This document shows, piece by piece, positions 1 through 64,000 of a stretch of 64,000 bases of DNA. How positions within the stretch are numbered: position 1 is the first letter of the stretch; each line of letters starts with the position of its first letter. The notes beneath the pieces are model-generated. The model did no database searches and was not told the origin of the DNA. It saw only the letters and a program-made list of their open reading frames with translations. The DNA lies in assembly GCA_021613535.1 (NCBI GenBank), contig CP075494.1, forward strand, positions 13,578,001 to 13,642,000, read 5' to 3'. Both the position numbers and the translations under genes were made by a program. The stretch is from Adineta vaga (taxonomy: Eukaryota; Animalia; Rotifera).

Positions 1-3000
1 ACCCAAAGTGGAAGCAGCTAAGCCAGCTAATGAACAATCATGTGTTATTGGTCAAGATACTCAGATCACATGGAAATTTAGTGGTGTTGAGAAACCACAA
101 GTAACATGGCTCTTCAAAGGACAACCACTTACAACTAATGAACGATATCAAATCACCGAAGGTGAAGATGGAACATCGACACTAGCCATCAAGAGTGCTG
201 AACTCACTGACAAAGGTGTTTACACTGCGAAAGCAACAAACGCAGTGGGTGAAGCAGAAGCAAAAACAACACTCAACATTGCTGGTATCAAACCAGTGAT
301 CACGAATGATCTCGAAGGTACATTACAAGCAACGAAAGGTGAATCAATGACAATCAAACTACAAGTGACAGGTACACCTCGACCTGATGTCATTTGGTGT
401 CGAGGAAATGATGATCTTGTACCAAGTGATCGTATTCAAGTAGTAGCACCAGCAAGTGAAGGTGATGACACATACACACTGACAATTCTGAATGTTCAAC
501 CAGAAGATCAAGGTGATTATTCAGCTAAAATAAATAATGTTGGTGGATCACTCAAAACAAAGAAATGCAAAGTGACCGTTACAAGTAAGTTATCGAACCT
601 TTCATATGCTTTTTCTAGTCTTACTTTTAATAGAATTACCCGTCTTTGTGAGCAAACCAACAGCTCAAGAAGTCAAACAAGGTGAAACAGCGGTGTTCCA
701 AACAAAGATCGATGGATATCCCACACCTAAAGTCACATGGCTTCTCAATGGCAAACTATTGACAGCGAAAGAAGGCGCGCAAGTCGAACTCAATGCTGCA
801 ACTGGTGATGCCAAACTATCAATTCCTAAAGTTGATCTACAACAACATTCAGGCACAGTTACATGTCGACTCGAGAATCCACATGGGACTCAGGAAGAAA
901 CTGCACGACTCGATATTCTTGCTGCACCACTCATCACCACTCAACTGCCGAAACAAGAAGAAACAGTGAGTGGCAAAGATGTGACACTTCGAGTCGTTGT
1001 TCGAGGTTCACCACGACCTGAAGCACAATGGTTCTACAATGACACACCGGTACCTGCAGAGAATACCACATTTGATGAAGAAAAGAGCGAATATCAACTC
1101 ACAATAAAACAAGCCACAGTTGCTACAAGTGATGGAACATATCGTGTTGTGTTGAAGAATGATCTTGGAGAGAGTGAATCAACACCATGTGTATTGACAG
1201 TACTGGAACCAGTGAAGGTAACAAAGACAGCACCAGCGAGTGATGTTGTCGACTTGAAAGTGGGTGAAGCATTTGAATTATCGTTTGATGTTGACGGTAA
1301 AGAAGCACCAAAAGTACAATTGACCAAGGATGGCAAGGAAGTGAAGTTCAGTAGTGTTGAAGGTGTGAAACATGTATATTCGATTGGTGAAGTAAAACCG
1401 GAACATCAAGGCGTATACAAGTTGACAGCAAAGAACAAAACATCAACAGAAGAAAATATTGTAACATTGAAAGTGACAGGTATGTCATTTTGATTATTAA
1501 CTAAAACTCGTACCCAAGTTTCGATGCGTTGCTGCGTGAGGTATCTTCTTCATACTCCATATGATATTCGTAGATACTATAATCTTTGCATTTCCGATTT
1601 GTAAATAGCAACAATGCTATACGAGAAACATACCAATCATACCGAACTATAACGTCATTCAGTACCATAATCCATTATGTATGTGAATATAAATGAAAAG
1701 CTAGCTTGTTCATAAGATATGGCCTGCAGAGATAGTCGGAAGTTTTCCATGAAACTTAAAATATGTATATTTCTTACGATTATTCATACATATTTTAGCC
1801 CCACTAAATATTACACAATCATTAACTGATACGAATGTTCTTCTTGGACAAAATGCAACTCTATCAATCATCTGTGATGCTTTTCCAGCACCAAAAGTAA
1901 CCTGGTAAGTTATCTATAGAGCCCCCCAAAGAGGTCCAACGTCTATGATCATTATTTTTTCCAAAGGTTTTCGAATGACACCGAATTGAAAACATCCGCA
2001 AAACATAAGATTGAAGTCAAACAGAATGTCTTCTCACTCACTATCAACAAAGCAGACCATCCCGACGTTGGCACATATCGTGTTCACGTTGATAATGGTA
2101 TTGATCAAACTGATCAAACGGCGAAACTCAACGTCGGAGGTAATACTCTTCCTCTTCACAATCAAAAACAATGCCTATGCATATATTTATTCTCATTTCT
2201 AGTCAAACCAAAAGTGGAAGCAGCGAAGCCAGCCAACGAACAATCATGTGTCATTGGTCAAGATACACAAATCGCATGGCGATTCAGTGGTATTGAGAAA
2301 CCACAGGTGACATGGCTCTTCAATGGACAACCTCTTACAACTAATGAACGACATCAAATCACCGAAGGTGAAGATGGAACATCGACACTAGTCATCAAGA
2401 GTGCTGAACTTACTGACAAAGGTGTTTACACTGCAAAAGCAACAAATGCAGTGGGTGAAGCAGAAGCAAAAACAACACTCAACATTGCTGGTATCAAACC
2501 AGTGATCACGAATGATCTCGAAGGTACATTACAAGCAACGAAAGGTGAATCAATGACAATCAAACTACAAGTGACAGGTACACCTCGACCTGATGTCATT
2601 TGGTGTCGAGGAAATGATGATCTTGTACCAAGTGATCGTATTCAAGTAGTAGCACCAACAAGTGAAGGTGATGACACATACACATTGACAATTCTGAATG
2701 TTCAACCGGAAGATCAAGGTGATTATTCAGCTAAGATCAGTAATGTTGGTGGATCACTCAAATCGAAGAAATGCAAAGTCACTGTCATGAGTAAGTTTAT
2801 ATTCAGTTTTATGGCCCTCTGTTTTAAGTCACTGTATATTTCTCTAGAATCACCCGTCTTCGTGAACAAACCAATCTCGCAAGAAGTGAAACAAGGTGAA
2901 ACAGCAGTATTCGAAACACAGATCGATGGATATCCCACACCTAAAGTCACATGGCTTCTCAATGGCAAACCATTGACAGCGAAAGAAGGCGCACAAGTCG

Positions 3001-6000
3001 AACTCAATGCTGCAACTGGTGATGCCAAACTATCAATTCCTAAAGTTGATCTACAACAACATTCAGGCACAGTTACATGTCGACTCGAGAATCCACATGG
3101 GACTCAAGAAGAAACTGCACGACTCGATATTCTTGCTGCACCACTCATCACCACTCAACTACCGAAACAAGAAGAAACAGTGAGTGGCAAAGATGTGACA
3201 CTTCGAGTCGTTGTTCGAGGTTCTCCACGACCTGAAGCACAATGGTTCTTCAATGACACACCGGTACCTGCAGAGAATACCACATTTGATGAAGAAAAGA
3301 GCGAATATCAACTCACAATAAAACAAGCCACAGTTGCTACAAATGAAGGAACATATCGTGTTGTGTTGAAGAATGATCTTGGAGAAAGTGAATCAACACC
3401 ATGTGTATTGACAGTACTGGAACCAGTGAAGGTAACAAAGACAGCACCAGCAAGTGATGTTGTCGACTTGAAAGTGGGTGAAGCATTTGAATTATCGTTT
3501 GATGTTGATGGTAAAGAAGCACCAAAAGTACAATTGACCAAGGATGGCAAGGAAGTGAAGTTCAGTAGTGTTGAAGGTGTGAAACATGTGTATTCGATTG
3601 GTGAAGTAAAACCAGAACATCAAGGTGTATACAAATTGACAGCGAAGAATAAAACATCAACTGAAGAGATGACTGTGACACTCAATGTGACAGGTAGTGT
3701 TTCATAATAACGATTAGTGTCCTATCTATTCGAAGAAGTAGATGAATTTCGTAATCCTATTGTTGTGATCATGCGAAAATTAGAATGAAATGAGTAGAAA
3801 ATGTCTTATAAGGTTGGGAAGTTAAGATGAGCTTATGGGGGAGAAATGATTCACTGAAAAATCAATATTTTTCTATCACATAAAAATAAAAATGTGGATC
3901 TATCATAGCGTCTTTAGATTCGATAGTTTCAGTTAAAGCAACCATTACTTGAGAGAAGTTATAGTTTGAGAACAAGCGATTATAACTATTGATAACTACA
4001 TAGATCTTACCCTAGGAAATTCAATAACACGTTTCTATAAATCGAGAGAACTTGTTAACTTCATAAAATTGTCCCATCTGCAAGGATCAATCGATCTATC
4101 ACATCACATCGTATATACTATGCAGACAATATTTTATATTCTATATGCGATTGCCAGAAATTTCTAATTCCCTCTCACTTAAGTACTAAAAGGTGATTCC
4201 TTACAGTCAGTATATATTTTAATGCTTTCCTTATAGCACCTCTCAATATCACACAATCACTAAGTGATACGAATGTTCTTCTTGGACAAAATGCAACTCT
4301 ATCAATAACGTGCGACGCATTTCCTGCACCAAAAGTAACTTGGTAAGTATTTTCTCACAATACATGCAACAAACTTCGAGTAACCAACATTTCTTTTCTC
4401 AAAAGGTTTTCGAATGACACCGAATTGAAAACATCCGCAAAACATAAGATTGAAGTCAAACAGAATGTCTTCTCACTCACTATCAACAAAGCAGACCATC
4501 CCGACGTTGGCACATATCGTGTTCACGTTGATAATGGTATTGATCAAACTGATCAAACGGCGAAACTCAACGTCGGAGGTAATACTCTTCCTCTTCACAA
4601 TCAAAAACAATGCCTATGCATATATTTATTCTCATTTCTAGTCAAACCAAAAGTGGAAGCAGCGAAGCCAGCTAACGAACAATCATGTGTCATTGGTCAA
4701 GATACACAAATCGCATGGCGATTCAGTGGTATTGAGAAACCACAGGTGACATGGCTCTTCAATGGACAACCTCTTACAACTAATGAACGACATCAAATCA
4801 CCGAAGGTGAAGATGGAACATCGACACTAGTCATCAAGAGTGCTGAACTTACTGACAAAGGTGTTTACACTGCAAAAGCAACAAATGCAGTGGGTGAAGC
4901 AGAAGCAAAAACAACACTCAACATTGCTGGTATCAAACCAGTGATCACGAATGATCTCGAAGGTACATTACAAGCAACGAAAGGTGAATCAATGACAATC
5001 AAACTACAAGTGACAGGTACACCTCGACCTGATGTCATTTGGTGTCGAGGAAATGATGATCTTGTACCAAGTGATCGTATTCAAGTAGTAGCACCAACAA
5101 GTGAAGGTGATGACACATACACATTGACAATTCTGAATGTTCAACCGGAAGATCAAGGTGATTATTCAGCTAAGATCAGTAATGTTGGTGGATCACTCAA
5201 ATCGAAGAAATGCAAAGTCACTGTCATGAGTAAGTTTATATTCAGTTTTATGGCCCTCTGTTTTAAGTCACTGTATATTTCTCTAGAATCACCCGTCTTC
5301 GTGAACAAACCAATCTCGCAAGAAGTGAAACAAGGTGAAACAGCAGTATTCGAAACACAGATCGATGGATATCCCACACCTAAAGTCACATGGCTTCTCA
5401 ATGGCAAACCATTGACAGCGAAAGAAGGCGCACAAGTCGAACTCAATGCTGCAACTGGTGATGCCAAACTATCAATTCCTAAAGTTGATCTACAACAACA
5501 TTCAGGCACAGTTACATGTCGACTCGAGAATCCACATGGGACTCAAGAAGAAACTGCACGACTCGATATTCTTGCTGCACCACTCATCACCACTCAACTA
5601 CCGAAACAAGAAGAAACAGTGAGTGGCAAAGATGTGACACTTCGAGTCGTTGTTCGAGGTTCTCCACGACCTGAAGCACAATGGTTCTTCAATGACACAC
5701 CGGTACCTGCAGAGAATACCACATTTGATGAAGAAAAGAGCGAATATCAACTCACAATAAAACAAGCCACAGTTGCTACAAATGAAGGAACATATCGTGT
5801 TGTGTTGAAGAATGATCTTGGAGAAAGTGAATCAACACCATGTGTATTGACAGTACTGGAACCAGTGAAGGTAACAAAGACAGCACCAGCAAGTGATGTT
5901 GTCGACTTGAAAGTGGGTGAAGCATTTGAATTATCGTTTGATGTTGATGGTAAAGAAGCACCAAAAGTACAATTGACCAAGGATGGCAAGGAAGTGAAGT

Positions 6001-47023: not shown

Positions 47024-47810
47024 TCACGGATACATAATATCTTCGATTTTCTTCAGTAATTCTTTTGTATATTCAATTGCTTGTTCAGCTTGTGCTAAAA
47101 AACAAGAAAAAGTTATTAAAAAGAATGGACAAATTAATCTTCGACTTACAAACAGTGAATACTTCAGCTGGAATTTTAGCAAATCGTGCTGCATTAGGAT
47201 ATTGCATTCGATTTGGATCACCGATCCATTTATATAATTTATAACCAATTTCTCGTACATCATTATCAACACCGATTAATAAACCTGGAATATCTGCCGT
47301 CATATTTTTGCCAGTATCTTTATAATAATGATACGCTTTCAAGGCTTTTTCAGCCGCCTAGAAGACAAAAAATTTATCAACATATTCTATTATATCACCA
47401 GACATATTCTTTAAGTGTAGGTTTTGTTGATGTAGAAACTATCTTTATTATCATTCTCATCTGTCACCTTGTCTCTTATCGTCTACATTGTTCGAGTTTA
47501 TTTAACATACTGATTGTTCTCATTCATATTGCATAATCTTTACTTTTAATATTCTATTTACTCATTAACTAAAGAGCACTTTATTATTGATTCTATCTTT
47601 GTATAAACAATCAACACAATAATTTACTTTATTCATCATAATGATTGTATACTTCATATTTTAACTACGAAGAATATTCTCATGGAGAAACTTACGCGAT
47701 AACATTTATAACAAGCCCAATCATATGCCACTTGTCCTGTCGATGAGTGCATATCACTATATGAACTTTCGAGATCATGTTGTGCTTGTTTAAGCCATCG
47801 ATCAGCTTCT
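47024..47810 (-). other. HEPN domain of the sacsin-like protein, spread over the last three exons
   Basis: Spliced translation EADRWLKQAQHDLESS..AYDWACYKCYRAAEKALKAY..NRMQYPNAARFAKIPAEVFTVSQAEQAIEYTKELLKKIEDIMYP*. Confidence 0.87.
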
Positions 47811-50800
47811 GATTGTTGATAATTACGTTTTCGACGTGCATTTGGACTTTCTTCTATAAAAATAAGACAAGAAAAAAATAAATAAATATCATTTGCAAAA
47901 CTAAATGTTCAAGTCAATATAACTAAAAGCTTTCTACAATAATGAATAGTTCCACATCTACCCAAAAAAAAGAAAGCAACGAGCACTCACCAAAAATAGG
48001 ATCGGAAACTAATATGAAAGAAAGAAAGAACGAAATAATAAACATATAAACAATACATCATTCTGTGCGTGTGTTGACTACATGCAAAAAATGAACTAGA
48101 AGAAAAAACAGCAAACTTACTTCCTCCAGTTGATGATGATGGTTGAGTATTTGTACCATTCGTTGTCGTATTCGTATTATTTGTCGTATTTTCTTCTGTG
48201 GGAGTAAAAAATCCATGACGTCTTTGAAAACCATGTTGACGTCGATATTGCCATTCTTCACGTGCTGTACGAAATGACGATGATCGATGTGGACTAAATC
48301 GACTTTTCGTTCCATTTGGATCTGTATTCTCGGCATGATCTTTTGGTATATCTTGATAACTACGTTTCGTATCATCCGTTGAATCTTTATTTAAATTATC
48401 AAAACTACCAAAACGTTCATCACCAGTTGTTGCTGATGATGAACTTTGATGATGATCACTTTTTGTCGTATTCGAATATTTATTCCAACTAAATCTTGGA
48501 TCCGATGTTGAAAATGGTGTATGTTGAAAATTATTGAATGTATTGAAAAATGATGTTAAGGGATCATTTTCGAAATGATCAATTTGTTTACGTAGATGTT
48601 TGAATACTTCAGCAGCGAAACGTTCACGACCGGGATTTTTATCTGGATGCCATTTTAATAGAAGTTTTTTGACTGTTTTCTTACGTTCTTGTCCTGTTAA
48701 TTGATAGGCTTGTCGAACAGCATTGTAGATTTCGGTTTTCGTTAATTCTAATTCAGTTTTATCGATCATATCTTGTTCATTGGTTTGTGTTGATTCAGAC
48801 TCGGATTGAGATTCGGACGTTGCATTACCTGAGGAGTCACTATCTGCAGATGTTTGAGTTTTGAAATTATCGAAACCATTTGTTGAATGATTGAAATCAT
48901 TGGTAGATTCACCAGCATGATTCGTTTTTCCTGTACGTTTGGAAGAGGAAGAAGTTTTTTCATCGTTGAATTTATCTTTATCACCATTTTTGCCTATAGA
49001 CGACACACGCACAGTGAATCACATGGGTTAAATGTAGGATGAGGGAAAGGAAGAGAGACCGAATGTAAAGTTTTGGTAAGGCAAAGAAATCTCTTTTTTC
49101 GGGGAAATATTATGTTTTGTTCTTCATGTAGAATATTGAAACTATTCAATCTCGAAAGCTCTTAATGAATTCAATCAACACTTCTAACGCAGTTAGTATT
49201 ATTCAATCACTTATTTTCAATGACTTCTACTTTTTCTCTTGTGATAATCACACATGTAAGAAGAAGCAATCATAAGCAACGGATTTAGATATTAAAGCAA
49301 CACATATACATATATACATATATACATATACATGAATGAATAACAAATTGTTATTCGTTCAGTTATATATACATATATATATGAATATCATTCGGTCTCT
49401 GATTGAATAAAGTCTCTTTGTTTTTTCTTCTTTCCTACCTTGTGTCGTTGTCGTTGATGATTTGAATGAATCTCGTTCGTCAACTGGTTTTGTATGTACA
49501 GCATCGAATATTCTTGACCAATGTTCGAGTACATAGAAATTTGATGCTTCTATTTTTTGTGTTTCATTCGCATCATTAATTTTACATACAAATACATAAG
49601 ATAATGTTGAATCTGATTTCTTCCATGACCATTCATCTTGATTATTATCTTGTTCATTAGTAGATTCTTTAAGAATCTTTTCTACTTCACAATAAATATA
49701 AAGATCATTCATACGATAAACACATAAATCTCCTGGTAAGATTTGATGTAAATCAATATTAAATTGTTGTAATTGTTCAATATCATCACCATAAACATTA
49801 CCTGGCGATGGAATATATTGTAATTTAAGTATTGATAAGATATTTTCTTCTGTCGCAACATTGACTAAATTCAATAATTTTGCCATTTGTCCAATTGTTG
49901 TAGCTAATAGTGCAGCCATAACCGAATTATCCAATTGTAATTCAGATAGACCCAAACATGGACTTAAAGCACGTGCAAGACATAATGTAAAATAAGGTTG
50001 TTCAGTATGTTTCATACTGATATATAGAATAACATTTTCTTCACCTTCAACAACTAAATAAACGGCTTTTTCATCGACCGATTGATCAAGTTTTTGTTGT
50101 GTCTTCTTATAGATAAGATTGGTTTCTAAATATTCCACGCATGTAACTTTAACAAAAGTTAAACGTTGTCGAATTAAATTTTCTACATCATCAATCGAAA
50201 TAATCTTAGGATTTTGTTGTCGTGCAACATGATTTGCAATAACACGTGCCATACAACGATGTAAATGACGTGAAGATAATAATTGATTATATTTTCTTTC
50301 GAGATTAAATAGAAAACGTTGACGATGAGATTCTTCATCTTCAGGTATTGTTATTGAAAATGATTCTTCATATTTCTGACTAAATAAAACCGGACGTTGA
50401 CTAACGAAGATTTTATCAATAATATCTTTAATATTTGTTGTTGCCGTATTTGTTTTCGGATTTGCTGCTGCTGCTGATGATGGATTCGCATCAAGTTTAA
50501 GAACACGTTCATTTGGATTGAACATAAATTTATCTTGATTTAATTTCGTTATATAATCAATTTTCGTTCGATCATCCATAATGACAATATCGTTCGATTT
50601 AATAAGTTTAAAATCATTCGAAACAAAATAAAGACCAGGTAATTTTGTCTGTGGAGTTATCGTCGTACTTGTTGATAGATATTTAAAAAAACATTCCATT
50701 GCTTTCAATGATTTACATAATTCATTGGAATTTAAATAATCTTGTTCACAAACTTTCGATAATTTTCTTAGAATATCTCCGTATAACATCGGATGTGGTT

Positions 50801-53800
50801 CAGCTTGTGTACCAAGTTGAAGAAAGAATTCTTTATATTCATGAAATTCTGTATCTAATGAGAAGATAAATGGAGGAATTTCATCTGTAATAGGAAGATT
50901 TAAACAGAAATATTTGGCCGCAAGAAATTGTCGACGTGTTCGAGAGTAGATGAATTCTCGATCTTCTAATTCTTTATAGATTTCAGTTCGACGTTCGGGT
51001 TTAATTTCATGTTGAAAATAATTATAGATAGATTTCAATGCTGGAATAAGTATCTCATCGATGACATGTTGTGTAATAGTTGTTGAAGGAGCTTTTGGAT
51101 CACTAGAGAGAAAGAATAAGAATGGAAATAATAGGAAACAAACAAAAAACAAACTTGAATTGTTGATTTTTCAATGAAAATTTCTTTGCTAAATTAGCAA
51201 GATTCTTTTGTACTAATGCATAAGAAGGTTTTTTATTTAATTTGAAAAATTCCAAGGCATTTTCATCGATGGTTTCTTTTTGATCATTAACATCATTATA
51301 ATGTTCCAGACGAATAAATTCCGGTAATAAATATGACGATGTCCAACATAATTTAGCATCTTTAATCAATTCACCATCGCTTAATTTAATACATGTAAAA
51401 CGAAAATGATCGGCAACATTTGTATCCGAACAATTACTATATGGTTCATGTAATTGTAATAAGTCATCATGATCCGCATGCATCTGATATGGTTCAAGAA
51501 ATTTATAATCTAAGATTGAATTATCATAACGTGTCCAATTACTTAAGAGATGTTCATATAGATATTTCGAACGTTTACGTTGTTCGTTTGTCCAACCTTC
51601 TTGTTTTACATTCAATTGAATTGATTCCATGATTTGTTTACATTTATCTGTTGAAATATATGATCGAAGGCCGCATTCTTTGAGAAATTTCAGTAATGTT
51701 GGTGTATGAAATTGTTCATCAGGAAAATGATGAACACCTAAGATGGAACGAATGTTTTTGATATTTGGATCGTATAATTCATAGACTGGACAGATTTCTG
51801 GTGGATCACGCTAGAATGAGAAAGGCAAAGAATTGGCATAGAATGTTTGATATTTTGTCTCTTACTGATGATCGAGCAATTCCTGTTGGTGTCTTTTGTA
51901 AACAATCATTATTATTTGTAGAGGTTTGTGTAAAAATTTCTAATAAATCATGTAATTGTTTTTTACATTGTTCTTTTTCATGTGGAAATAATTTCTCTTC
52001 AATTTCTTCGATGAAATATTTCAAAAGATTTGCTTGAGATTTCACATCAAGTTTACGAAAATATGGTAAACATAATTGTAAGAAGATTTCCAAATCCGAT
52101 AGAATATTGAATCGAATATGTGAAAAGATTTTACTTAAGGGTTCGATTTTCTTTTGCATGAGAAGAACAGTTTTCTTTTCATGAAATTGTTCACTGAAAA
52201 AATTACGTTTAAATGAACGACGAATAATATTTGCCCATTCTTCATGTAAAACATAAACATGTGCAAAGTTTTCTAATGAACAACATTGTTGTATGGGAAT
52301 TTGTTGTTGTTGTTTATCATCGGATGAAACAATACCCCAGATTGGTTTGTAGATTTTCAGTTCGCGAAGTTTTTGAAAATTACCTTGATAACCATGAATA
52401 AGAAAATCATTGAAATATTTTAATATAATAACAATATCATCATCGGATAGATTATTGGTTATTTGTGTATGTTTATTTGATTCGAGAAGAAATTCTAAGA
52501 CGATATTAGGATTTAATTCATCCATATTTTCAACTAATTGTGGATTTATATGTGGATCATCGAGACGTGCTAAGATTGATTCAAGTTTTTTATTTCCAAA
52601 GATCTTGGGAAATAAACGTGAAGTTGCTGTTGTTGTTGTTGTTGTTGTCGTCGTTGAAAGATTTGATGGCACCGTTTGAGATTCAATTAATGGAGTTGGC
52701 GGAGTGGATGAGATTGTTGCAGTGGCTGTAACGGTTGGAAGTTTTCGTACTTTAACACCACCTTTAAGACAAACACGTCGATCAATTGATGGATGAACGT
52801 AATGTTCATCCTGTGACGATGATGATGATGATGGATTTGACACTGAAAAAGAAACAAACAAATACATAGATATATATGAAATATTCGATGGAAAAAAGAT
52901 CTTCTTTATTCAAAAAACTCATTTACAGTTAACTGAAGATGGAAATTTGAAGACAATTGTGTGATTACTCCGTTTCAATGGTGTCGTCGACATTCTCTCC
53001 TGTGTCGCGATGCTTGGTTATAATAATACTGTACTGTCTGTATGCTAAAAAATGCTACCACAACAACCAACAATTGTGTCAATAGATGGAAGCGCGATAA
53101 GATGACTGACAGAATCGAGAGAGAAGAAAAGGAATTGTGTATTCGTTTCTTTAAATATAACCAAGAAGAAAAAGAAGAAGAAGAAAGCAATGATGCTGAC
53201 GACGACAAGGTTAGAACAATAATAATGTAAACTACAGTCGCATTGATATTAAATGTATTGTATATTCAGTCAAGTATTCGTAAAAGGTACTGATGAAATG
53301 ATGAGGTTTGTATATGCTTATATTTAATTGAATAGATCAATGATTTTACATCATATTTGAGAAGGATCGAGAATATATATATGACAAGTCATGGATGACC
53401 TAACTTGCGTCGACGACAGGTTTGATATGCATATATGTATATATATATAGAGATAGATAGATATATATGATATGGGAGAAAAAGAAGTGTATATTGACTA
53501 ATTAAATTGATTACATTGACAACTTACACATTTGTTCTCTTTCAAATGGATAGAAAAATAATGTCGAACCAGGATGAAGAACACAATCAACATTTGGTAA
53601 ATGTAAACTAATATTTGCATTTAAAATATTCGAATATTGTTCAATTAATAATGCATAAATATTTTGTAATAATGTTAAATCATCTTTATCTATTGGTTTA
53701 GTTCCATATTTTTTCTTTATTTGTTCAATAATATTCAAAAGATCTTTTCCTTCAACTTGAATTTTAATTTGTAAAAGATCTAAGAAGAAATTCTTGTAAT

Positions 53801-56800
53801 GTTTATGTAATGACATTGATATGGGATAATAATATGGTTTTAAATTATTCGATATTGATGTTCGACTTGGTGCTTGCCATAATAATTGAGATAAAGATAA
53901 AAATAGATAAGTATCTGTAGATGATGAATCATTCATATAGATCAAACGACGTTGAGAGAAAAATTCACGGATATCTCGAATACATTGTTCTAATTGATTG
54001 GATGTCATAGATGATGAACGATATTCAAAAAGATGTTCACTGGATTTTAAATGAGGAAAACAGAATGATTGAATATAATCATAGAGTGTATAACTCATGT
54101 CTAAAGAAAAACAAAAACAAAACAAAATTCATGAGATAATGTCTGGAATTAATCATGTAGCAACAATTGAATACTCAAGAGAGATGTCGATCATATAGAT
54201 GAAAGGTTTTGTTTTTTTTTACTTAGGGAATGTTATTTCCGTTGAATATGAAACAAAGAATTTTCTTTCGTATTGATCGCTCATAGGAGAATTGTTAAGG
54301 TTAGAAAAAGAAAATGAAATATGTATGCTTCTTTCGAAGAATCTTACCGAGAATATATTTTGATGTTATTTGATGATTATAAATGGCTGAACTTGGTCCG
54401 TTAATAACTGTTAATTTTGTTAATTCATCAAGTTGTTTTAAAACATCTCGTAATTCAATTTTAGTTGTATCATCTAATCCAAGAAAATGTTCGACTTGTT
54501 TGGTTATTGTCGGTTGTTCTTGTGCATTTTTAGATTGTTGAGCAATAGGCCATGAACAACAAACTAATTGTTCATATTGTTGAGATAAAATATCTTTTGG
54601 TTTAAATAAACGACCAATGTATTTATCACCCATCCATATTAAACTAATTCCATTTAATTCGTGTGGTCTTTGTTTTATTGGTATAAACGGTAACTCTCGA
54701 AGTTGTACTGATGCACGTGTTCGTGCTTCTTTGTCATGAAGTGCTTCATGTGTATTAGAAGTTGATGATTGAGAATTCGATGGTTTATCACGTGAAAGCG
54801 AAGTAGATTGTCGTGAACGACGATCAGTTGAATCATCATTTTCATCATATGTTCGTGTTGTATTTGAAGACGATATGGAAAGCATATCATTAAGAATTTG
54901 TAGAAGTGCTATGGAACGTTCATGTGCTAAATCATAATCTCGCATACGTTGAATTGATTCACAACGTTCGACAAGTTCAGGCCAAGTGACAAGATTATCA
55001 TCACATTTCATTCCTAGAAGAAGAAAAAAAAACAGAAATTTATAAACTAGACTGACATTTATTGATAGAACATGTCGTTGACAAGAAGAGCTTGATTTTC
55101 ATCTCTAAGGTAAATGTTTATTTTCCTTCTCGTCTATTCTTACCAAGTAATTTCAAAACATTCAATCGATCTTCTCGTAAATAAGAATCTTGTCCACCAT
55201 ATGGAAATAACGAATCAATATCCGAATATAAAGATGCTAAACGACAATATGGATGAATTAATTTCGATGGTTTATTTAAAATTCTTCCATTTGGTGTACA
55301 TGGAATACAACAATGTTGTTTGAGAATATTTAACATTAAAGCATCAGCATGATCTAATGCAAAGAGAACCAATGTATCTTTCACATTTTTTGGCAGAACA
55401 TTTAAATTTGGTAAAAGTAAATCATTATAAGCACGATAATGATCGTAAAGATTCTTTTGATATTCTACACCTGACATTTTACGAATGAAATAATCTTCTT
55501 CGGTTAATAATTGACATTTTTTCTCTTTGGAAATAGTTGTTAAGGCTTGAACAACAATTTCTTTTACATTATTTTGTTTATTGAAAATATCTAAGAAAGT
55601 AAAAGAAAAGAGATGCAATGAAATGTAGAGAAAAAAAATCATACCTGGAAGATAGAGATAAATTTTATCATCAGATAAATCTAATGTACTAGAAAATGTA
55701 ATTCGTGTTTGTTCATCAGGAACCGTTTTTGTTGGCATTGTCTTCGTATTTTTCGTTTCGAAATCATTGATTATTTGTAATAAACGACGATCATTTGTAT
55801 ATGTTTCTTTTATCCATTTAAATAGATTTTCATCATAAATTTGTTGATTACGAATGATATCTTCTAATTTCGCACTGTCCGGATGATGTTTAACACCCAT
55901 GGATTCAAAAAATTTTCGATAATTATATAATTCATATGGAAGAATTTGAACATAGGGTGCTAATGGATGAGTTTTATCAATTAAATAGATTTGATTAGAT
56001 GTAGAAAATCCATTTGTACCATTCCATATCCATTCATTTAAATCACATATACGCATTTCTTTTAAAATATCATTAGAATTATTCATATGTGATAAAGTAT
56101 CATATAAACGTTTGCATAGATTTAAATAATCAAATGTTTCACTTTTTTGTTCATGAGAAGAACATTTGAGATAACATAGAACAATACATTTCAATTGTTT
56201 AATTAATAAATCAAGTTTTATTTCACGCATATCGATTAATAAACGATTTGATGTCGAATTTAATGTACGTGACGATGAAAGAAAATTTTCCGGAAGATCA
56301 AGAGATGAAACAAGTGCTGTAGCACCGATCAAGAAAACATTTGATTTATCACATACTTCACGTGGTGTAACAAATGGACGACGAGAATCAATTGAACCTA
56401 AATCAGATTTACAGTGAAACATCGAATGAAAAATGTTATATAATTGAAAGAAAAATTTCAAATTAGAACCTTGAAAAAGAAAGAGAAAAACGTTTTGGTC
56501 ATTTCTTTCGAATTCTACCTTGAATTTTCATTCAATTAGTTATTTCAATTTCGATCAAATGAATAATTATCAAAACGAAACGTTCGATATCATCATCGAA
56601 AAATAATTGCTTGAAATCATACTCAAACAAAACAAAAAAAGAAAACGAAGTTTTTACCTTGCCATGTTAATGTTGATGGATAGGAATTTGGTCTTTCAAG
56701 CATAACTGGTATCCATTGTGTGATATTTAAATATTGTTTTAAACTAATTCGTTTTGTTTGAGAATAATCATCGATTAATTTCGCATTTTGATTTAAAATA

Positions 56801-58595
56801 TCAATAATAAAATCTGCTAATAAGAACATTAATGAACGTTTACCATTGGCTGCTGATTCTTTTATTGTTAATTCACATATATCAATTAATTCATCGCATT
56901 TTATATCATAGAATTGTTTTAATTTTAAATGTTTAAGTAATGTTATATGTTCATTTGTTGAACAAATATCAATCGATGGTAAATATTTTGATTCAAATAA
57001 GATTAGAAATTTTTCTTTATTATTCACATGAAATGATGTTGGATCAAACATTTGTTGACATGAACAGAGTTCACCTTTTCGATTAGGAAATAATCGACTT
57101 GTTGATAATGTATCTTGACAAACAACATCTGTTAAAATCAAATTGGCACAATTCGATAACAACCATTTGCCTAGAGAAAACACAAAAGAAGATTTAAATT
57201 AGCAAAATATCTGACAGATGTTAACATTTTCGACATTTATCAGAAGGACAGACTATTATCCTTGAAAGAGAAAAATAGATTTATTCATGCATAGATTCTC
57301 CACGCATAAGCGCCTTGTCAAAAACCGTGAATAGACAAAGTCTAGTCGATTATTAAATCTTGATATTATAATGCAAAAAAAACCCGTGATAAATAGTTCA
57401 AAGTTTTCTTTTTTTTTTGCTAGTGACTTCAATTTTTCGAAGGACATTCATGTTCGAGGTCAATTGATAAAGAAAATCAAACCTTTCAACTTCTCAATAT
57501 GAAATCAATGATTTTCAAATGAAAAGAAAACGATTTGTATATCTAATGCATAATTCCTAATATCTCAATAAACAAGTTCTTCTGGTTGACTTGAAGGTCT
57601 TTCTTTTTCATTTCATATGTATATTTATTTACCTAAAAATGCCATTTTTTGTTGATCATTCTTCAATAATGTATTCATTGTTGATGCAGTTTGTATCGGA
57701 TGTTGTTGTTGCTGTTGGATATTTAATTGTTGTTGTTGTTGTTGTTGTTGACCAATTGTTGTGATAAGATATCTAGCAACATGTGTAAAATCATGGATAA
57801 CATAACCTAATTTATCTAATAAGATTCGCGAATCACTATCAGTTACATGAATACATTGTTTTGGTGGTTGTAAATCACAAGGTAATTTTGTTCCAGATTC
57901 ATAAATATACAGAATATTATTTAAACTAATATATCGATATTGTTGTTGATTGTTATCAACACCTAAAAATGCATTATCAAAAATAGGTAATTGTTTAATA
58001 CATTGAATATTGGAATCATCTAGTTGTTGTGTCATGATACGTGATAAATATTGTCGTAATAATTTCATATCATGTTCATTTAATAATGTATTAAATTCAT
58101 GTTGAATTTTCAATTGTGTAAAATGTCTCAAACGACATTTAAAGATTTGTAAAAGACCGAGACAAGATAATTGAGGAACATATTCTTCAATTGATTTATG
58201 TCGACGAATAATTTCAGGAAATGGTTCAATACAATAAAAATTTAATTTCAAAAGTATTTTTTGAATAGCTAAATCATCTTTACTTGGAACAATAGGTAAT
58301 TGAATAAGGCCAATATTTTTCGATAATTTATATAATGATATACTACTATTTGCTGTGGAAGCACCAATAGGACGTGATAGAGGTTGTAAATAGAGTATAT
58401 TCGTATTTTCTAACATGGAAAGATCATTAGGAAGTTTTTCATTGATATATTTCCAGAGATTTTCAAGCCATTCAATGTTGTAATAATCATGATTTCTAGG
58501 CCATTGAATACAATCATCACCACGACGCCATTCTCGTGGTAACATAACTAAATCAGCGAAATCTTTGCTCGGCATTGATTGAAGTTGAGTACGAT
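47024..58595 (-). CDS. Sacsin-like protein (~2,850 aa plus N-terminal exon(s)) with J-domain and C-terminal HEPN; exons 58595-57633, 57170-56658, 56397-55645, 55590-55144, 55013-54348, 54100-53528, (52932-52927), 52842-51866, 51810-51155, 51102-49439, 48993-48121, (48008-47991), 47853-47696, 47357-47150, 47094-47024
   Basis: Sacsin repeat motifs (CIPCTPNG..PSKLIHP..LFPYG..LGM; ELYDP..FP..F..FLKECGL; WIWNG..LAPY), J-domain KKLLLKWHPDKN and HEPN EADRWLKQA..DWACYKCY..AEKALKAY..YP..IP.EVFT. All exons join in frame through GT-AG introns. Confidence 0.9.
48575..48750 (-). other. DnaJ (J) domain of the sacsin-like protein with intact HPD motif
   Basis: EIYNAVRQAYQLTGQERKKTVKKLLLKWHPDKNPGRERFAAEVFKHLRKQID. 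Confidence 0.9.
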
Positions 58596-60456
58596 CTAGG
58601 ATATAAACATGTATATTAGTTTTGTTTATGAATCATTTCAATGATTCGATTAGAATGTCAAAATAAATCTCATCAAATATTCTCGTTATTCTTTATGCAA
58701 ATAGTGTCTTTTCGAGAGAGAGAAAAAAAACGAATCAACATTCCTTTTTTTTTCTTCATAATATTATTCCCTAATGACCATATCCAAGACAGCAGCTGAT
58801 ACCTACTCATCGCTTCCTTTGCTTGTATGTGTATGTGTGTCTGTATTTAGTGGAGAAATCTATGTATGGCAAGTCAATTCATTAGCATACTCGATTAATC
58901 AGTAAATGTCAACAATATTCTTTCTCGCTCTCCATATATATAGATATATGTATGTTTAAATATATATGTTCGTCTAATCCTATCAATGTACATTCTATGT
59001 CTAGCTTTATTTAGTAGAAAAAACAAAACGATAATGTCAGTCAATTACATTCATTCATTTTGTAGAAAAACTGACAATTATTTCTCATCGATAAGATTTC
59101 TTTGAAAAAGAAGGAAGGAAAGAAAGAAATCCGAACGTTTTCATGATCAATACTGAAATAAGATCTTGTTCTCATTGTCAACTGCTAAACTATAATTTAT
59201 CGCATCAATGATATCTTGATCTTTGTTATTCATCAATCATTTCTTTCAATTTTTTGTTAAAGATGAAAAATCTACATTCTTTTGTTGCTTAATGATTATC
59301 ATTAACTATCTTAGTCTTTCATTAATATATGATCTTATCGATGATGTGAAGTAAAAACGGATGATTAGATTAACTTTACAATTGTTTATACGAACAAATT
59401 AGTACGAGATTAGATCATTGAAAAAAAGAACGAAAGGAAGAAGAAATTTCTCGTAAATGAAAAGTTGATTTGCTCATAAATTATAAATCGAATCTTCTTT
59501 CAATTAAACATAATGATACATTGCCTTGATTCAACGACGAAACAAAAAACGAAAAAAAACGAAAATGGTATGCTTGACAACCTACATACACACGTTTATT
59601 TGCTTCGCTCTTTGATATATTTAAGTGTCCTTCTGAGCAATAAAGGCGTTTGCTTCGTCAAAAGAAGGAGGAGAAGAAGAAGAAGAAAAAGAGGGGCAAA
59701 AAAGCAATCAGACACTTTTTTGTATATGTGTGGTTTCGAAGCTTGAGAATCGATCAATGTCTTTATTGACGTCGTTCCTCGTGTCAAGACAATAGTAACA
59801 ATGTAGAATAGAAATGAAAAGTATACATATGTTTAAATAATCGATTAACGAAGAAAACGGAATGTTTTTAGTTTGATAACAGTGAGTTGAAGGTCTTTGA
59901 AGAAAAATCGATTTAAATATTCATTCTTTTACATACAAAACGAATTTGTTCAACAATAAAAAAACGATTTTTCAGTATTTATAAACCTTGTCATACCGTA
60001 ATGTGAACAATCATTTTTTGTTGTCACATTTATCAAGGATGACTGACAGTTTTTTTTTACTGACATTTGCTTAACACATATGAATATATGTATGTGTATA
60101 CATATTGCATATCGATGAATCAACATAAAAATGTTGAAAAATTGTCAAGCTTGAAGATTCACTAGGGATATTTATATATATTCAAGTACGAACTGTTCAT
60201 CGTGTCTAAGAATGAAATTCAATCCTATTCGAAGGCTAAAGATTATCTTCTGTATATATATATGTAGTTACTCGTTTTTGCTGTTTGCTCTAGTAAATAA
60301 TCAATATAGAAACCTTCTGTACATGTTCGCATACTGAGAAGAAGAAGTAGAAGAAGAAGAAGAAGAAGAAATCCGAGAAATGTTGCACAATTTGTGGTAT
60401 GTGCAGCTAATTAGTGGTTGAAATAAAAGACACAACTGTTTTGAAGATACACGCAC

Positions 60457-60799
60457 CCTCTTCATATTGTTGTGGTTTTGATGTTGGTGTTGGAGTAGCT
60501 GTGGCGATATTGCGTGACGAAAGATAAATATTTGGTGTTGGTGTCAGATCCCAAGCGGAAAGAAAACGCGGTCGATGCTGTTGTAATGGACCTAAGTAGG
60601 ATGAGGACAAAAGTGGTGGTGGTGTACGAATACGATGTTGATGATGCTGTGGAAATACGAGTGGAGCTCGATGTAAATAACGTGCAGATGTTGATGTTGA
60701 ACGATTTCCGTTCGTCGTCTGATGTCGTGGATTAGTATTAGATGAGAGTTGTTCGTAACGATTGGGTATCGTTGCTGAAAAGTGATATCGTGAATCCAT
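60457..60799 (-). CDS. Candidate alternative first (or cassette) coding exon of the sacsin-like gene, low-complexity P/T/S/H/R-rich
   Basis: ATG 60799 (MDSRYHFS..), 343 nt, ends GAG G|GTGCGT in phase 1, compatible with the phase-1 acceptor before 58595. Confidence 0.55.
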
Positions 60800-61022
60800 T
60801 GTATCTTTATTTGAACACACGCATATACACGGTGTATAGAGTAGATTTTTTTTATTTCAGGCTAGACAATGAGTGTAATCATCATCCTCAATCTTCACCT
60901 TCTTCTTCTTCTCCTCTTCGTTCGTAGTCCGCGTGATGAAGAAGAGGAGTAGTAGGAGAGTGACGACGTATGTACAGGGACGTCATCGTAAAAAACCTGT
61001 ATGAATATACGTAAGAGAAATT

Positions 61023-61026
<4 letters not shown>

Positions 61027-61086
<60 letters not shown>

Positions 61087-61098
61087 TGTGTGTGTGTG
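61027..61098. repeat. Compound microsatellite (AG)29 followed by (TG)7
   Basis: Directly visible; lies ~230 nt upstream (minus strand) of the candidate first exon at 60799. Confidence 0.95.
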
Positions 61099-61172
61099 CG
61101 TATATGTGTAAGAGAATATATGCAAACGCAAATGATGTCGTTGATGAGAGGAAGGACCAGTAAAGATAGAAG

Positions 61173-61220
61173 AAAAAAGAGACAGAGTAGTAGAAAAAAG
61201 AGACAGAGTAGTAGAAAAAA
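61173..61220. repeat. 21-bp tandem duplication AAAAAAGAGACAGAGTAGTAG x2
   Basis: Directly visible. Confidence 0.8.
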
Positions 61221-62586
61221 GAAGAGAAAAGAAATAGAGAATAGTACATATACATTCAATATGAGGAAGAAGAGCAATACCATCACTCTCTTTCTCCTAG
61301 TATTTTTTTCTTCCTCCTCTCTATTTACTATTCTTACAATAATGCTAACATTGCACCGGTATACTAAAGCTGTCTGTGTAATGTCATCACATAATGAAGT
61401 TGTTTTAGGATGATAATGGTCAAAGATTTTTACGTAATCTCTTTATCACGCGTTTGTTATTCAAACGTAAATGGAATAAAAACAATTCATAGATGAACAA
61501 AACTAGTCAGACACACGTAGGACAGCATACATTGTTACATTATTTGATTAATCTTCTTATTAACTAGATCAACTCGTCAGATAAACGCATTTATTTCTTT
61601 ATGCTTCTATGCATAAAACCTTCAATAAAGAAAACCTTTTTATTTCGTCTTTCTCTATACCTATATCTCTATAAAATAAGACAAATTTTGTGCGCATGTC
61701 TATTGATTACCTTGAGACAACTTCATTAATTATTAAATGATGAATCTCAATCAAGGAATCCCCTCTTTTTTTTTCTTCTACCCTTTATCATTAACACATA
61801 CCGTGACGAAGACAAACTGTACATGGTGATGTCAATTGTCCTTTTTGATATTTAAATGAACAAGTTCGTAATGTCAATTTCGGTAGTAAATGAAGATTAT
61901 CCGATGAAAAGGAAAGATTCCAATGTGAACGTGCAAAGATTTTTTTCGACATTTGTCATAGAAGAAATAAACCTAACAATAATAATCTCGAAAGATCATG
62001 TCTATTTATATACATATGATAAAGAACAAATGGATTACAACATCTTCGTCAAGAAACCGGTGAAACGTATCGCGACAATATATCATCTTTAATACTTGTC
62101 CTAGTTTTCCGGACAAAACTATTAGACTTTCTTAATGAAACTAACCAGATGTTTGATGTATAATTACATAAAAATATATATATTTATGTAAATATCTTTT
62201 TGCTTTCTTTTCGTTTATCTCTGCCTTGATTTTTCAAGTTCATTCACTACACTAATATACAGCATGCATCACTTCAAATGCATTGACGCATAGATCATTT
62301 TCTATTATCAATTTGCATATGATCAAATTTAACAAAAACCGAAGACGAAGAAAAGAAATCGACGAGTGTACAATCGAACGAATGAAAAAGAAAGCGTATA
62401 CACAATTGGTTTGATTGTAATGTGTATGTATATGTACTTATAATAACGAGCCATCGCGTTTCTGATGTATATTTTTCATGAAAAGAATGACGAGAGAGAG
62501 ACAAAATGAAAGACTTTTAAATGTATTTTTAACTCTCAGACATAGACATTCTCAAGGATTTCTGTTATTGAAAGAAGAATATTTAC

Positions 62587-63062
62587 CCGTTTGTTTTATC
62601 GGTATGTCGATTATCTGGTTTGCAATTGATATTCCTGTCTTATCTGTATTTTTTTCTTTGCTATTCCCTATGAAAAGATAAATATACAAAAGCGAGTAAG
62701 CGATCCATTATCGTACCGATATCATTTAGCGGTTGTTGATATTCTTCGACAGTTTGCTCTTGTACATTGATTGGCGATTGTTGTGCAAGAGTTTTAACAA
62801 GATCAAGATCAAGTGAAACTGGTCGTTTCATACGTTTTTTTAACCAACCACGTCCGATACACATGGGTATAGGTGTTTGTTGTGTGTTGATATTAAGTTG
62901 TGATTTATAATGTTGAGATTCTTTGGAAATTGGTAATGTATTATTGGTTGTTGTTGCTGTTTTATTTCGAAATATTGACAGATTTCTTGTCGAAAGAAAA
63001 TGACTAAGAAATGCATTGCGTTTTTTTGGTCCATTTGCGCTGCCTGGAGTGGCTGATGCCAT
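62587..63062 (-). CDS. Candidate 5' coding exons (63062-62717, 62667-62587) of the sacsin-like gene
   Basis: MASATPGSANGPKKRNAFLSHF..; donors G|GTACGA and G|GTAAAT are both phase 1; the 81-nt second exon is open; joins the 58595 exon in frame. Confidence 0.6.
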
Positions 63063-64000
63063 TGATTGATGAAAATAGGTGGAAGAAAGAAAGGAAGGAA
63101 ACGAGCAAGGTAAAGGTGGACTCTTTGAGTCTATTTTGTATAATACAGTCTCAGCAAAAGGATCTTTTCTCTCACTTCTTTTGACATACATACATATACA
63201 TAACGTTTCTTTCTTTTCTCGTTCTGTTGTATACTCTCGATTTTTTTTCTTTCTTTTTTTCTTCTTCTTCCATTCTCTTCGATTTCTTTTTTCTTTTCCT
63301 TCGACATTTCTTCATCAGAACACCTGAATACTTGCACATAACTAATATACAACAAAAAAAAGCGAAACAGGCGAGAAGCAAATATGTCGAATGACATTTG
63401 GAAAATGTGTCCGATTATCGTGAAATAAAAAGAAAACCTTCGATGTCATACGGACACGAAAGACCCATTGAACACACATATGTTTATAATTATAATTATA
63501 AATGTTACATCAAACATGTGTGTAGAAATGAATATTGAAAAATTTGTTACAAAAGATGTTTCAATGAATAATTTCTCTATTTATGACATTCAATTGTCAT
63601 ATACTTATCAAGTCATATTCTATGATTAACCTTTGAAAGAAAATTTTCTTTGCTTATTCATTCAAACAATCATAAAACAAGATATACATGACAATGATTT
63701 TAATCACGAAAAGAAGTATTCTTATAGGTAATTCAAGAACTATTTCTAACACAATGTTGTTTCTGGGATTTAGAAACGAAATGATATTTGAATTGATAGA
63801 TTATATGAACAAACGTTAATGAAAATCTATATCGTTTTCTTTTTTGTCTTTACTTTAACTCCTTCTTTTAACTTTGTTCAATACTTTCATATTGACAGGT
63901 ATCCAATCCAATCTTCTTGATATATACATAACTATATTCATTCATCCATTCAATACTCCACCCTAACCAACTCTAATTACACACCTTCAGTTTTAATACA

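Follow-up and report, generated by a model that had tools for sequence, protein, structure and literature searches.

The minus strand of the Adineta vaga stretch analysed here, a window of 64,000 nucleotides (nt) on contig C5 (C5:13,578,001-13,642,000; coordinates below are window positions unless a contig is named), carries a long run of open frames from 58.6 kb down to 47.0 kb, which we identify as an orthologue of sacsin (SACS), the vertebrate protein of Charlevoix-Saguenay spastic ataxia (ARSACS, an autosomal recessive disease). We consider it likely that this orthologue lost the SRR supradomains (sr1 plus sr2) of its second and third repeats, SRR2 and SRR3, in the common ancestor of rotifers and acanthocephalans, that its repeat-1 module has degenerated, and that its product is most probably free of ATPase function. 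Compared with the canonical sacsins of vertebrates, amphioxus and molluscs, the rotifer gene keeps the same order of SIRPT repeats (srX and sr3), followed by a C-terminal J domain with its HPD motif and then the HEPN domain, whereas SRR2, SRR3 and part of the SIRPT3 srX are missing, SRR1 is degenerate and skipped by the transcripts seen, and alternative first exons form the N-termini.

Exon map and colinearity with sacsin

A reference profile of nine canonical three-module sacsins (4377 states) was searched against every stop-free frame of the locus, and the exons mapped to it in strict order, from position 650 to position 4358, with two jumps. Judged by this colinear map, the srX and sr3 parts of all three SIRPT repeats are present in order in the rotifer gene, in agreement with the first-pass annotation, which had placed a sacsin-like gene at 47024-58595 and had stated that the later parts of all three repeats were kept. 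All searches were run exon by exon, or with database homologues, rather than with a joined spliced protein as query. The internal introns were predicted from GT..AG signals, frame and homologues and measure 52-685 nt, several of them being near 55 nt; the G+C content of the region is about 30%, and the proteins closest to the gene come from Adineta and Rotaria. The exons and the two introns at the jumps are as follows, with positions in the sacsin profile given for each.

Common exon 1, 57633..58595, minus strand: SIRPT1 srX, profile 650-917; phase-1 acceptor at 58596-58597, which is found in RNA contigs
Exon 2, 56658..57170, minus strand: end of SIRPT1 srX, profile 919-1087; intron boundaries predicted
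Exon 3a, 55645..56469, minus strand: SIRPT1 sr3 tail, profile 1084-1270, with a short low-complexity linker at its end
Intron at junction 1, 55591..55644, minus strand: 54 nt, GT..AG read directly; profile 1270 to 1876 missing (SIRPT2 sr1 and sr2)
Exon 3b, 55144..55590, minus strand: SIRPT2 just after sr2, profile 1876-2031
Exon 4, 54348..55013, minus strand: SIRPT2, profile 2029-2183
Exon 5, 53528..54100, minus strand: SIRPT2 sr3 tail, profile 2247-2349
Intron at junction 2, 52843..53527, minus strand: 685 nt, best GTAAGT..AG candidate; profile 2349 to 3210 missing (SIRPT3 sr1, sr2 and the start of srX)
Exon 6, 51866..52842, minus strand: disordered Ser/Thr/Pro linker of about 64 residues, then distal SIRPT3 srX, profile 3210-3387; contains FGNKKLESILARL
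Exon 7, 51155..51810, minus strand: profile 3397-3596
Exon 8, 49439..51102, minus strand: SIRPT3 sr3 and the stretch leading up to the J domain, profile 3598-4063; the most conserved part
Exon 9, 48121..48993, minus strand: J domain with HPD, profile 4091-4234
Exon 10, 47696..47853, minus strand: start of HEPN, profile 4235-4283; junction peptide matches the Rotaria protein P0004
Exon 11, 47150..47357, minus strand: HEPN core, profile 4283-4358
Exon 12, 47024..47094, minus strand: end of HEPN and stop codon

Added up from the common-exon junction onwards, the exons amount to about 2,864 codons, and the isoform that starts with exon A (described below) comes to about 2,978 residues, both figures being calculated from coordinates and not from a joined sequence. 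Overall, the rotifer product has about 2,900-3,000 residues, compared with 4,200-4,600 in canonical sacsins.

Pfam and NCBIfam scans of every exon recognised DnaJ as the sole family. An exhaustive profile search, started from the largest exon and its rotifer homologues, returned hundreds of proteins of 3,000-4,600 residues, among them Branchiostoma sacsin-like, hagfish sacsin and Haliotis sacsin-like proteins, and most of the matches carry two or three ELIQNADD motifs. Neither exon 1 nor exon 8 yielded a useful match in sequence searches of the PDB, and a word search with exon 8 found fragmentary rotifer gene models only.

At the C-terminus, the Pfam DnaJ profile reached an expectation value (E) of 2.7e-5 and 24.6 bits on exon 9, below its cut-off of 27.8, and the best match of this exon among solved structures is the sacsin J domain itself (1IUR, E 4e-13), with ordinary DnaJ proteins ranking far behind. 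The HPD tripeptide is intact within a WHPDKNP motif. The HEPN domain of the window gene is split by introns, profile 4235-4358 being matched across three exons, and the structural comparison was therefore made with the Rotaria orthologue P0004, whose HEPN region carries PF05168 and has the sacsin HEPN structure 3O10 as its best match (E 2e-6). On these results, the J-domain HPD is intact and the HEPN domain is present, as had been claimed.

Loss of the internal Hsp90-like supradomains

Across the whole assembly (100.8 Mb in six contigs, the scope of all genome-wide searches), the non-ATPase parts of mollusc sacsin match only two loci, the window gene and one on contig C2, which is its ohnologue; a second copy is expected in a degenerate tetraploid genome. 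The genome-wide search thus returned a single sacsin pair and no canonical sacsin paralogue, which answers the question, raised by the first-pass annotation, of whether one exists beside the gene.

Both jumps coincide with introns. The first takes the profile from 1270 to 1876 across the 54-nt intron at 55591-55644, which is the very intron (55644-55591) that had been named as the site of a jump, and the second takes it from 2349 to 3210 across the 685-nt intron at 52843-53527; two internal gaps of several hundred residues had been expected in such an alignment. Gap 1 takes out SIRPT2 sr1 and sr2, and gap 2 takes out SIRPT3 sr1 and sr2 together with approximately the first 260 residues of srX, so that whole SRR supradomains were deleted and the loss extends beyond the ATP-binding sub-repeat alone. 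The proposal that the internal repeats had lost their ATPase modules therefore stands for repeats 2 and 3, but it understated the extent of the loss, since sr1 and sr2 are both gone and the start of srX is gone as well in repeat 3. In human sacsin numbering the gaps lie at ~1352-1982 and ~2460-3344 (via hagfish sacsin, with human coordinates from PMC3629688), and the deleted regions include those of the catalytic arginines R1839 and R2893 that are proposed for sacsin in PMC9880540.

No window exon matches the Pfam SACS family (PF25794) at E<=0.1, and neither do the syndermatan homologues P0046 and P0045, the same profile giving 791 bits over three stretches on amphioxus sacsin as a positive control. 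The product of the window exons likewise contains no N-box (ExxxNAxD), no Asp-Gly G1 box and no glycine-rich G2 lid, and the reported absence of ATPase motifs was thus confirmed, with no SACS or HATPase match in any exon. The ancestral sr1 modules share their fold with the Hsp90/GHKL ATPases; the rotifer window product, in contrast to these enzymes, is without the Bergerat domain, the N-box, the G1/G2 glycine motifs and the region of the proposed catalytic arginines.

Neither jump leaves enough genomic sequence for the missing modules to be concealed there, as had been argued from the lengths of the introns. Jump 1 corresponds to 166 nt of genome, the GT..AG intron 55644-55591 included, and the frame change at this junction is located identically in the C2 ohnologue. 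Jump 2 corresponds to about 1 kb of genome, and because only 3 residues separate the exon 5 and exon 6 sequences in an intronless homologue, P0202, the interval 53527-52843 is a plain intron with no hidden exon.

Both jumps are shared beyond this copy. They recur in the C2 ohnologue, in the acanthocephalan proteins of Pomphorhynchus laevis (P0046) and Neoechinorhynchus agilis (P0045), and in P0202, which is encoded by a single stop-free frame of 2,825 codons (2,774 residues as called) on the metagenome contig L021 (40% G+C); this contig probably derives from another rotifer lineage in which the introns were lost. Since bdelloids and acanthocephalans have the same jumps, the deletions are older than the split between them. 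No full-length bdelloid gene model turned up when P0046 was used for a word search, and the sacsin models P0144 and P0186 of other animals have gaps that resemble missed exons.

Between the ohnologues, both of which have open frames throughout, the ratio of nonsynonymous to synonymous substitution rates (dN/dS) is 0.20 over 2,919 codons and ranges from 0.10 to 0.36 per exon. These values point to a gene under purifying selection, and the neutral evolution that had been named as a possible objection to a functional product is not what we find.

Alternative first exons at the 5' end

The gene does not begin at 58595, as the first-pass annotation had it: this position is the splice acceptor of an internal, phase-1 common exon. 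The region 58001-64000 was compared with contigs of four runs from the same species, of about 37 Mb each, whose RNA nature is inferred from GT..AG joints. A joint 58595<->60457 with GT..AG ends was present in all four runs, and a joint 58595<->62587, together with a 49-nt GT..AG intron at 62667-62715, in one run (X1). Exons A and B2 are the only sources of the junctions observed into the common exon, and the gene has at least two alternative coding first exons, namely A on the one side and B1 with B2 on the other.

Alternative first exon A, 60457..60952, minus strand: ATG at 60799, low-complexity leader of about 114 codons; stop codon upstream of 60820
Alternative first exon B1, 62716..63062, minus strand: probable ATG at 63062; RNA-like contigs cover 62716-62946; 49-nt intron to 62666; start and open reading frame (ORF) conserved in the ohnologue
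Small coding exon B2, 62587..62666, minus strand: spliced directly to the common exon, frame kept; phase-1 donor

The frame of both upstream exon sets runs on into the common exon, and both sets are conserved as coding sequence in the ohnologue, start codons included, exon A with 53% protein identity over a stretch that takes in its start. Conservation between the ohnologues begins exactly at the AG of 58597-58596, which lies 20 nt upstream of the presumed start codon, the ATG at 58575. Three codons differ in the stretch before this ATG, two of them synonymously, and P. laevis and contig L021 both share a conserved xTQxQxM peptide before the Met. The question of transcription is thereby answered in part, in that spliced RNA-like contigs enter the common exon, the coverage of this comparison being 58001-64000. 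The exact 5' end of exon B1 was not seen in the contigs. No ubiquitin-like domain was matched in leaders A and B1 or in the ORFs of the repeat-1 cassette described below; amphioxus sacsin P0078 also opens directly with a SACS module.

A (TC)n microsatellite at 60983-61100 lies directly upstream of exon A, and all RNA contigs end near 60950, just short of it. In each of the four runs, low-depth contigs at 59524-60486 extend over the intron that separates exon A from the common exon, which suggests transcripts that are unspliced or retain this intron, or a different transcript in the interval.

The repeat-1 cassette and alternative explanations

That the repeat-1 module might lie upstream of the window had been suggested before, and a module was indeed found there, with its ATP-binding motifs destroyed. 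On the strand of the gene, PF25794 matches C5:13,646,593-13,647,153, which is 4.6 kb past the window end, and it also matches the equivalent place upstream of the C2 ohnologue; the module is located 8-11 kb upstream, outside the window.

Degenerate repeat-1 SACS cassette, L017:2549-5375 (= C5:13,644,549-13,647,375): three exons; ohnologue at L019:4929-5912

The cassette open frame at L017 4437-5375 reaches 68.5 bits with PF25794. In both ohnologues the canonical N-box ILKELIQNAEDAGAS is replaced by LISTFLTYGQSLGAS, with loss of the N-box Glu and Asn (the box reads TFLTYGQSL), and a deletion takes 8 residues out of the GxxGxGF lid. Judged by these motifs, the repeat-1 module is a pseudo-ATPase that is unlikely to bind ATP. 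An sr2 remnant in the middle exon of the cassette was not significant (independent E 2.5). The last cassette exon (L017 2549-3076) covers profile 477-653 and closes with a phase-1 donor, CAA G|GTAGG, in a phase compatible with that of the common exon, whose own match opens at profile 650. Among 65 bdelloid matches, those that cover the end of this exon diverge past the conserved donor or stop within a few residues, and because the sequences diverge right after the donor it is a spliced internal exon and not the end of a gene. A junction from the cassette to the common exon was found neither in the 65 bdelloid proteins nor in the transcript contigs, in which the observed junctions skip the cassette. 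Of the two cassette exons tested, the module has a dN/dS of 0.42 and the exon after it one of 0.16.

About 20 further SACS or sacsin-type ATP-binding loci are scattered in the genome, e.g., at C1:11972349, C5:10141308, C5:3003029 and C1:10128527, and these have nothing else in common with sacsin.

The matching donor and acceptor phases, the abutting profile positions, the way in which bdelloid proteins diverge as expected for a spliced internal exon, and the dN/dS of the two cassette exons all lend something to the view that an ATPase-bearing sacsin is still made, by splicing of the cassette to the common exon, and the other SACS loci to the view that one of their proteins supplies the activity in trans. 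We nevertheless regard such a source of activity as unlikely: the replaced N-box residues and the deleted lid in both ohnologues speak against ATP binding by the cassette, all junctions seen into the common exon start from exon A or B2, and the resemblance of the other loci to sacsin ends with the SACS domain. Far less probable still is an ancestral architecture in which modules 2 and 3 were never part of this lineage and were acquired later by the canonical sacsins, a history that has no direct support and would draw only on the fact that the polarity depends on outgroup sampling alone. Mollusc, amphioxus and hagfish sacsins have three intact modules each, and because a mollusc and two deuterostomes thus share all three, loss is the parsimonious direction; moreover, what is kept of repeats 2 and 3 falls, in order, on the corresponding repeats, and a degenerate repeat-1 module is still present in the rotifer. 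A decaying pseudogene, or an artefact of assembly or annotation, is hardly credible, since fragmentary database gene models and the gaps in P0144 and P0186 are outweighed by open frames at a dN/dS of 0.20 in both copies, by spliced transcripts, and by a genome read directly and not via a gene model, with the same jumps in an intronless frame.

Several points weigh against our preferred reading, that of an ancient loss of SRR2 and SRR3 with a product most likely free of ATPase function. The cassette can probably be included in a long isoform, given its compatible boundaries, and the roughly 20 other SACS-domain loci could in principle act in trans. Furthermore, the boundaries of the internal introns are predicted and not observed, the RNA evidence is limited to the 5' end (58001-64000) and to a single study, whose contigs are taken for RNA on account of their GT..AG joints, and the human coordinates of the deleted blocks are approximate, being taken through hagfish offsets.

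Proposed mechanism and significance

In the history that we favour, two in-frame internal deletions in the rotifer/acanthocephalan ancestor took the ATP-binding sr1 and the middle-like sr2 out of repeats 2 and 3 and left in place the J domain, HEPN and, in each of the three repeats, the scaffold formed by srX and sr3. The repeat-1 supradomain is left only as a degenerate cassette with destroyed ATP-binding motifs, which the transcripts seen skip, and the alternative first exons, as shown for two leaders, add different short leaders to the common exon; these leaders may direct the protein to different places. If mammalian sacsin is a guide, the J domain with its intact HPD would recruit and activate Hsp70, the srX and sr3 repeats would serve as a client or cytoskeletal interface or scaffold, and HEPN would supply dimerisation and nucleotide or RNA binding, as described for mammalian sacsin in PMC9880540 and PMC13669270. 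A role as an ATPase-independent Hsp70 co-chaperone scaffold can reasonably be inferred from this combination of domains. Class C J-domain co-chaperones likewise bear a J domain with intact HPD on a large non-chaperone scaffold, and theirs is the most probable mode of action for the rotifer product; the rotifer protein differs from them in its descent from sacsin and in having HEPN and sacsin repeat remnants in addition, which we know of in no other J-protein family.

According to PMC9880540, ATP binding and hydrolysis by the Hsp90-like domains of sacsin, and the contribution of these domains, are still debated. Pathogenic missense mutations in sr1 and sr2 lead to the most severe phenotypes, in an analysis that covers vertebrate sacsins only (PMC3629688). 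The clade studied here kept sacsin under purifying selection although two supradomains were deleted and the third was crippled, which amounts to a natural domain-deletion experiment, and the rotifer gene separates the functions of scaffold, J domain and HEPN from that of the ATPase. As a tentative proposal, which we hold to be possible and short of probable, rotifers and acanthocephalans would share a selected SRR-less sacsin that predates their divergence, in which srX/sr3, J domain and HEPN are self-sufficient and the ATPase is dispensable for the ancestral activity; if true, this protein would be a natural template for shortened sacsins. The finding itself, as we analyse it, is one of lineage-specific domain loss, along with a corrected local gene structure, and the functional role is a putative one. 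In a full-text literature search, no paper turned up that describes how sacsin is built in rotifers or acanthocephalans, although a single transcriptome paper mentions sacsin expression in passing; a conserved, selected SRR-less sacsin is apparently new to the literature.

Exon 6 and further observations

The peptide FGNKKLESILARL in exon 6 is located exactly where SIRPT3 sr1 should begin, and it had been read in the first-pass annotation as a vestige of the repeat-3 sr1. The best local match of the A. vaga peptide in the whole sacsin consensus is the start of sr1 with the N-box; 11 of 300 shuffles reach its score, the corresponding peptides of P0202, P0003 and P. laevis are not significant or match elsewhere in the consensus, and HMMER aligns the adjoining residues to srX. 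With shuffles scoring as well, other lineages failing to reproduce the match and neighbouring residues assigned to srX, the remnant is unproven and was not retained as a feature.

The AlphaFold2 model of exon 6 (mean predicted local distance difference test score, pLDDT, 70; core ~85) begins with the 64-residue disordered linker, after which comes a mainly helical domain, and a fold search with this model found no Bergerat fold, no GHKL fold and no significant PDB match. The best structural matches of the domain (51866-52650) are weak, with Foldseek E of 0.24-1 and Z of 3-4.4 over 142-180 residues, the majority being chains of Hsp90, TRAP1 or HtpG that align by way of their middle domains. These matches, which are not significant, hint at an srX that is possibly Hsp90-middle-like.

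On contig L021 (L021:2322-10796), a gene for an XRN-type nuclease adjoins the sacsin frame, and ahead of this frame stand, here too, the conserved acceptor and the xTQxQxM peptide. In the window gene, intron 1 (57171-57632) measures 462 nt, compared with about 50 nt in the C2 ohnologue, which indicates an insertion in this copy.

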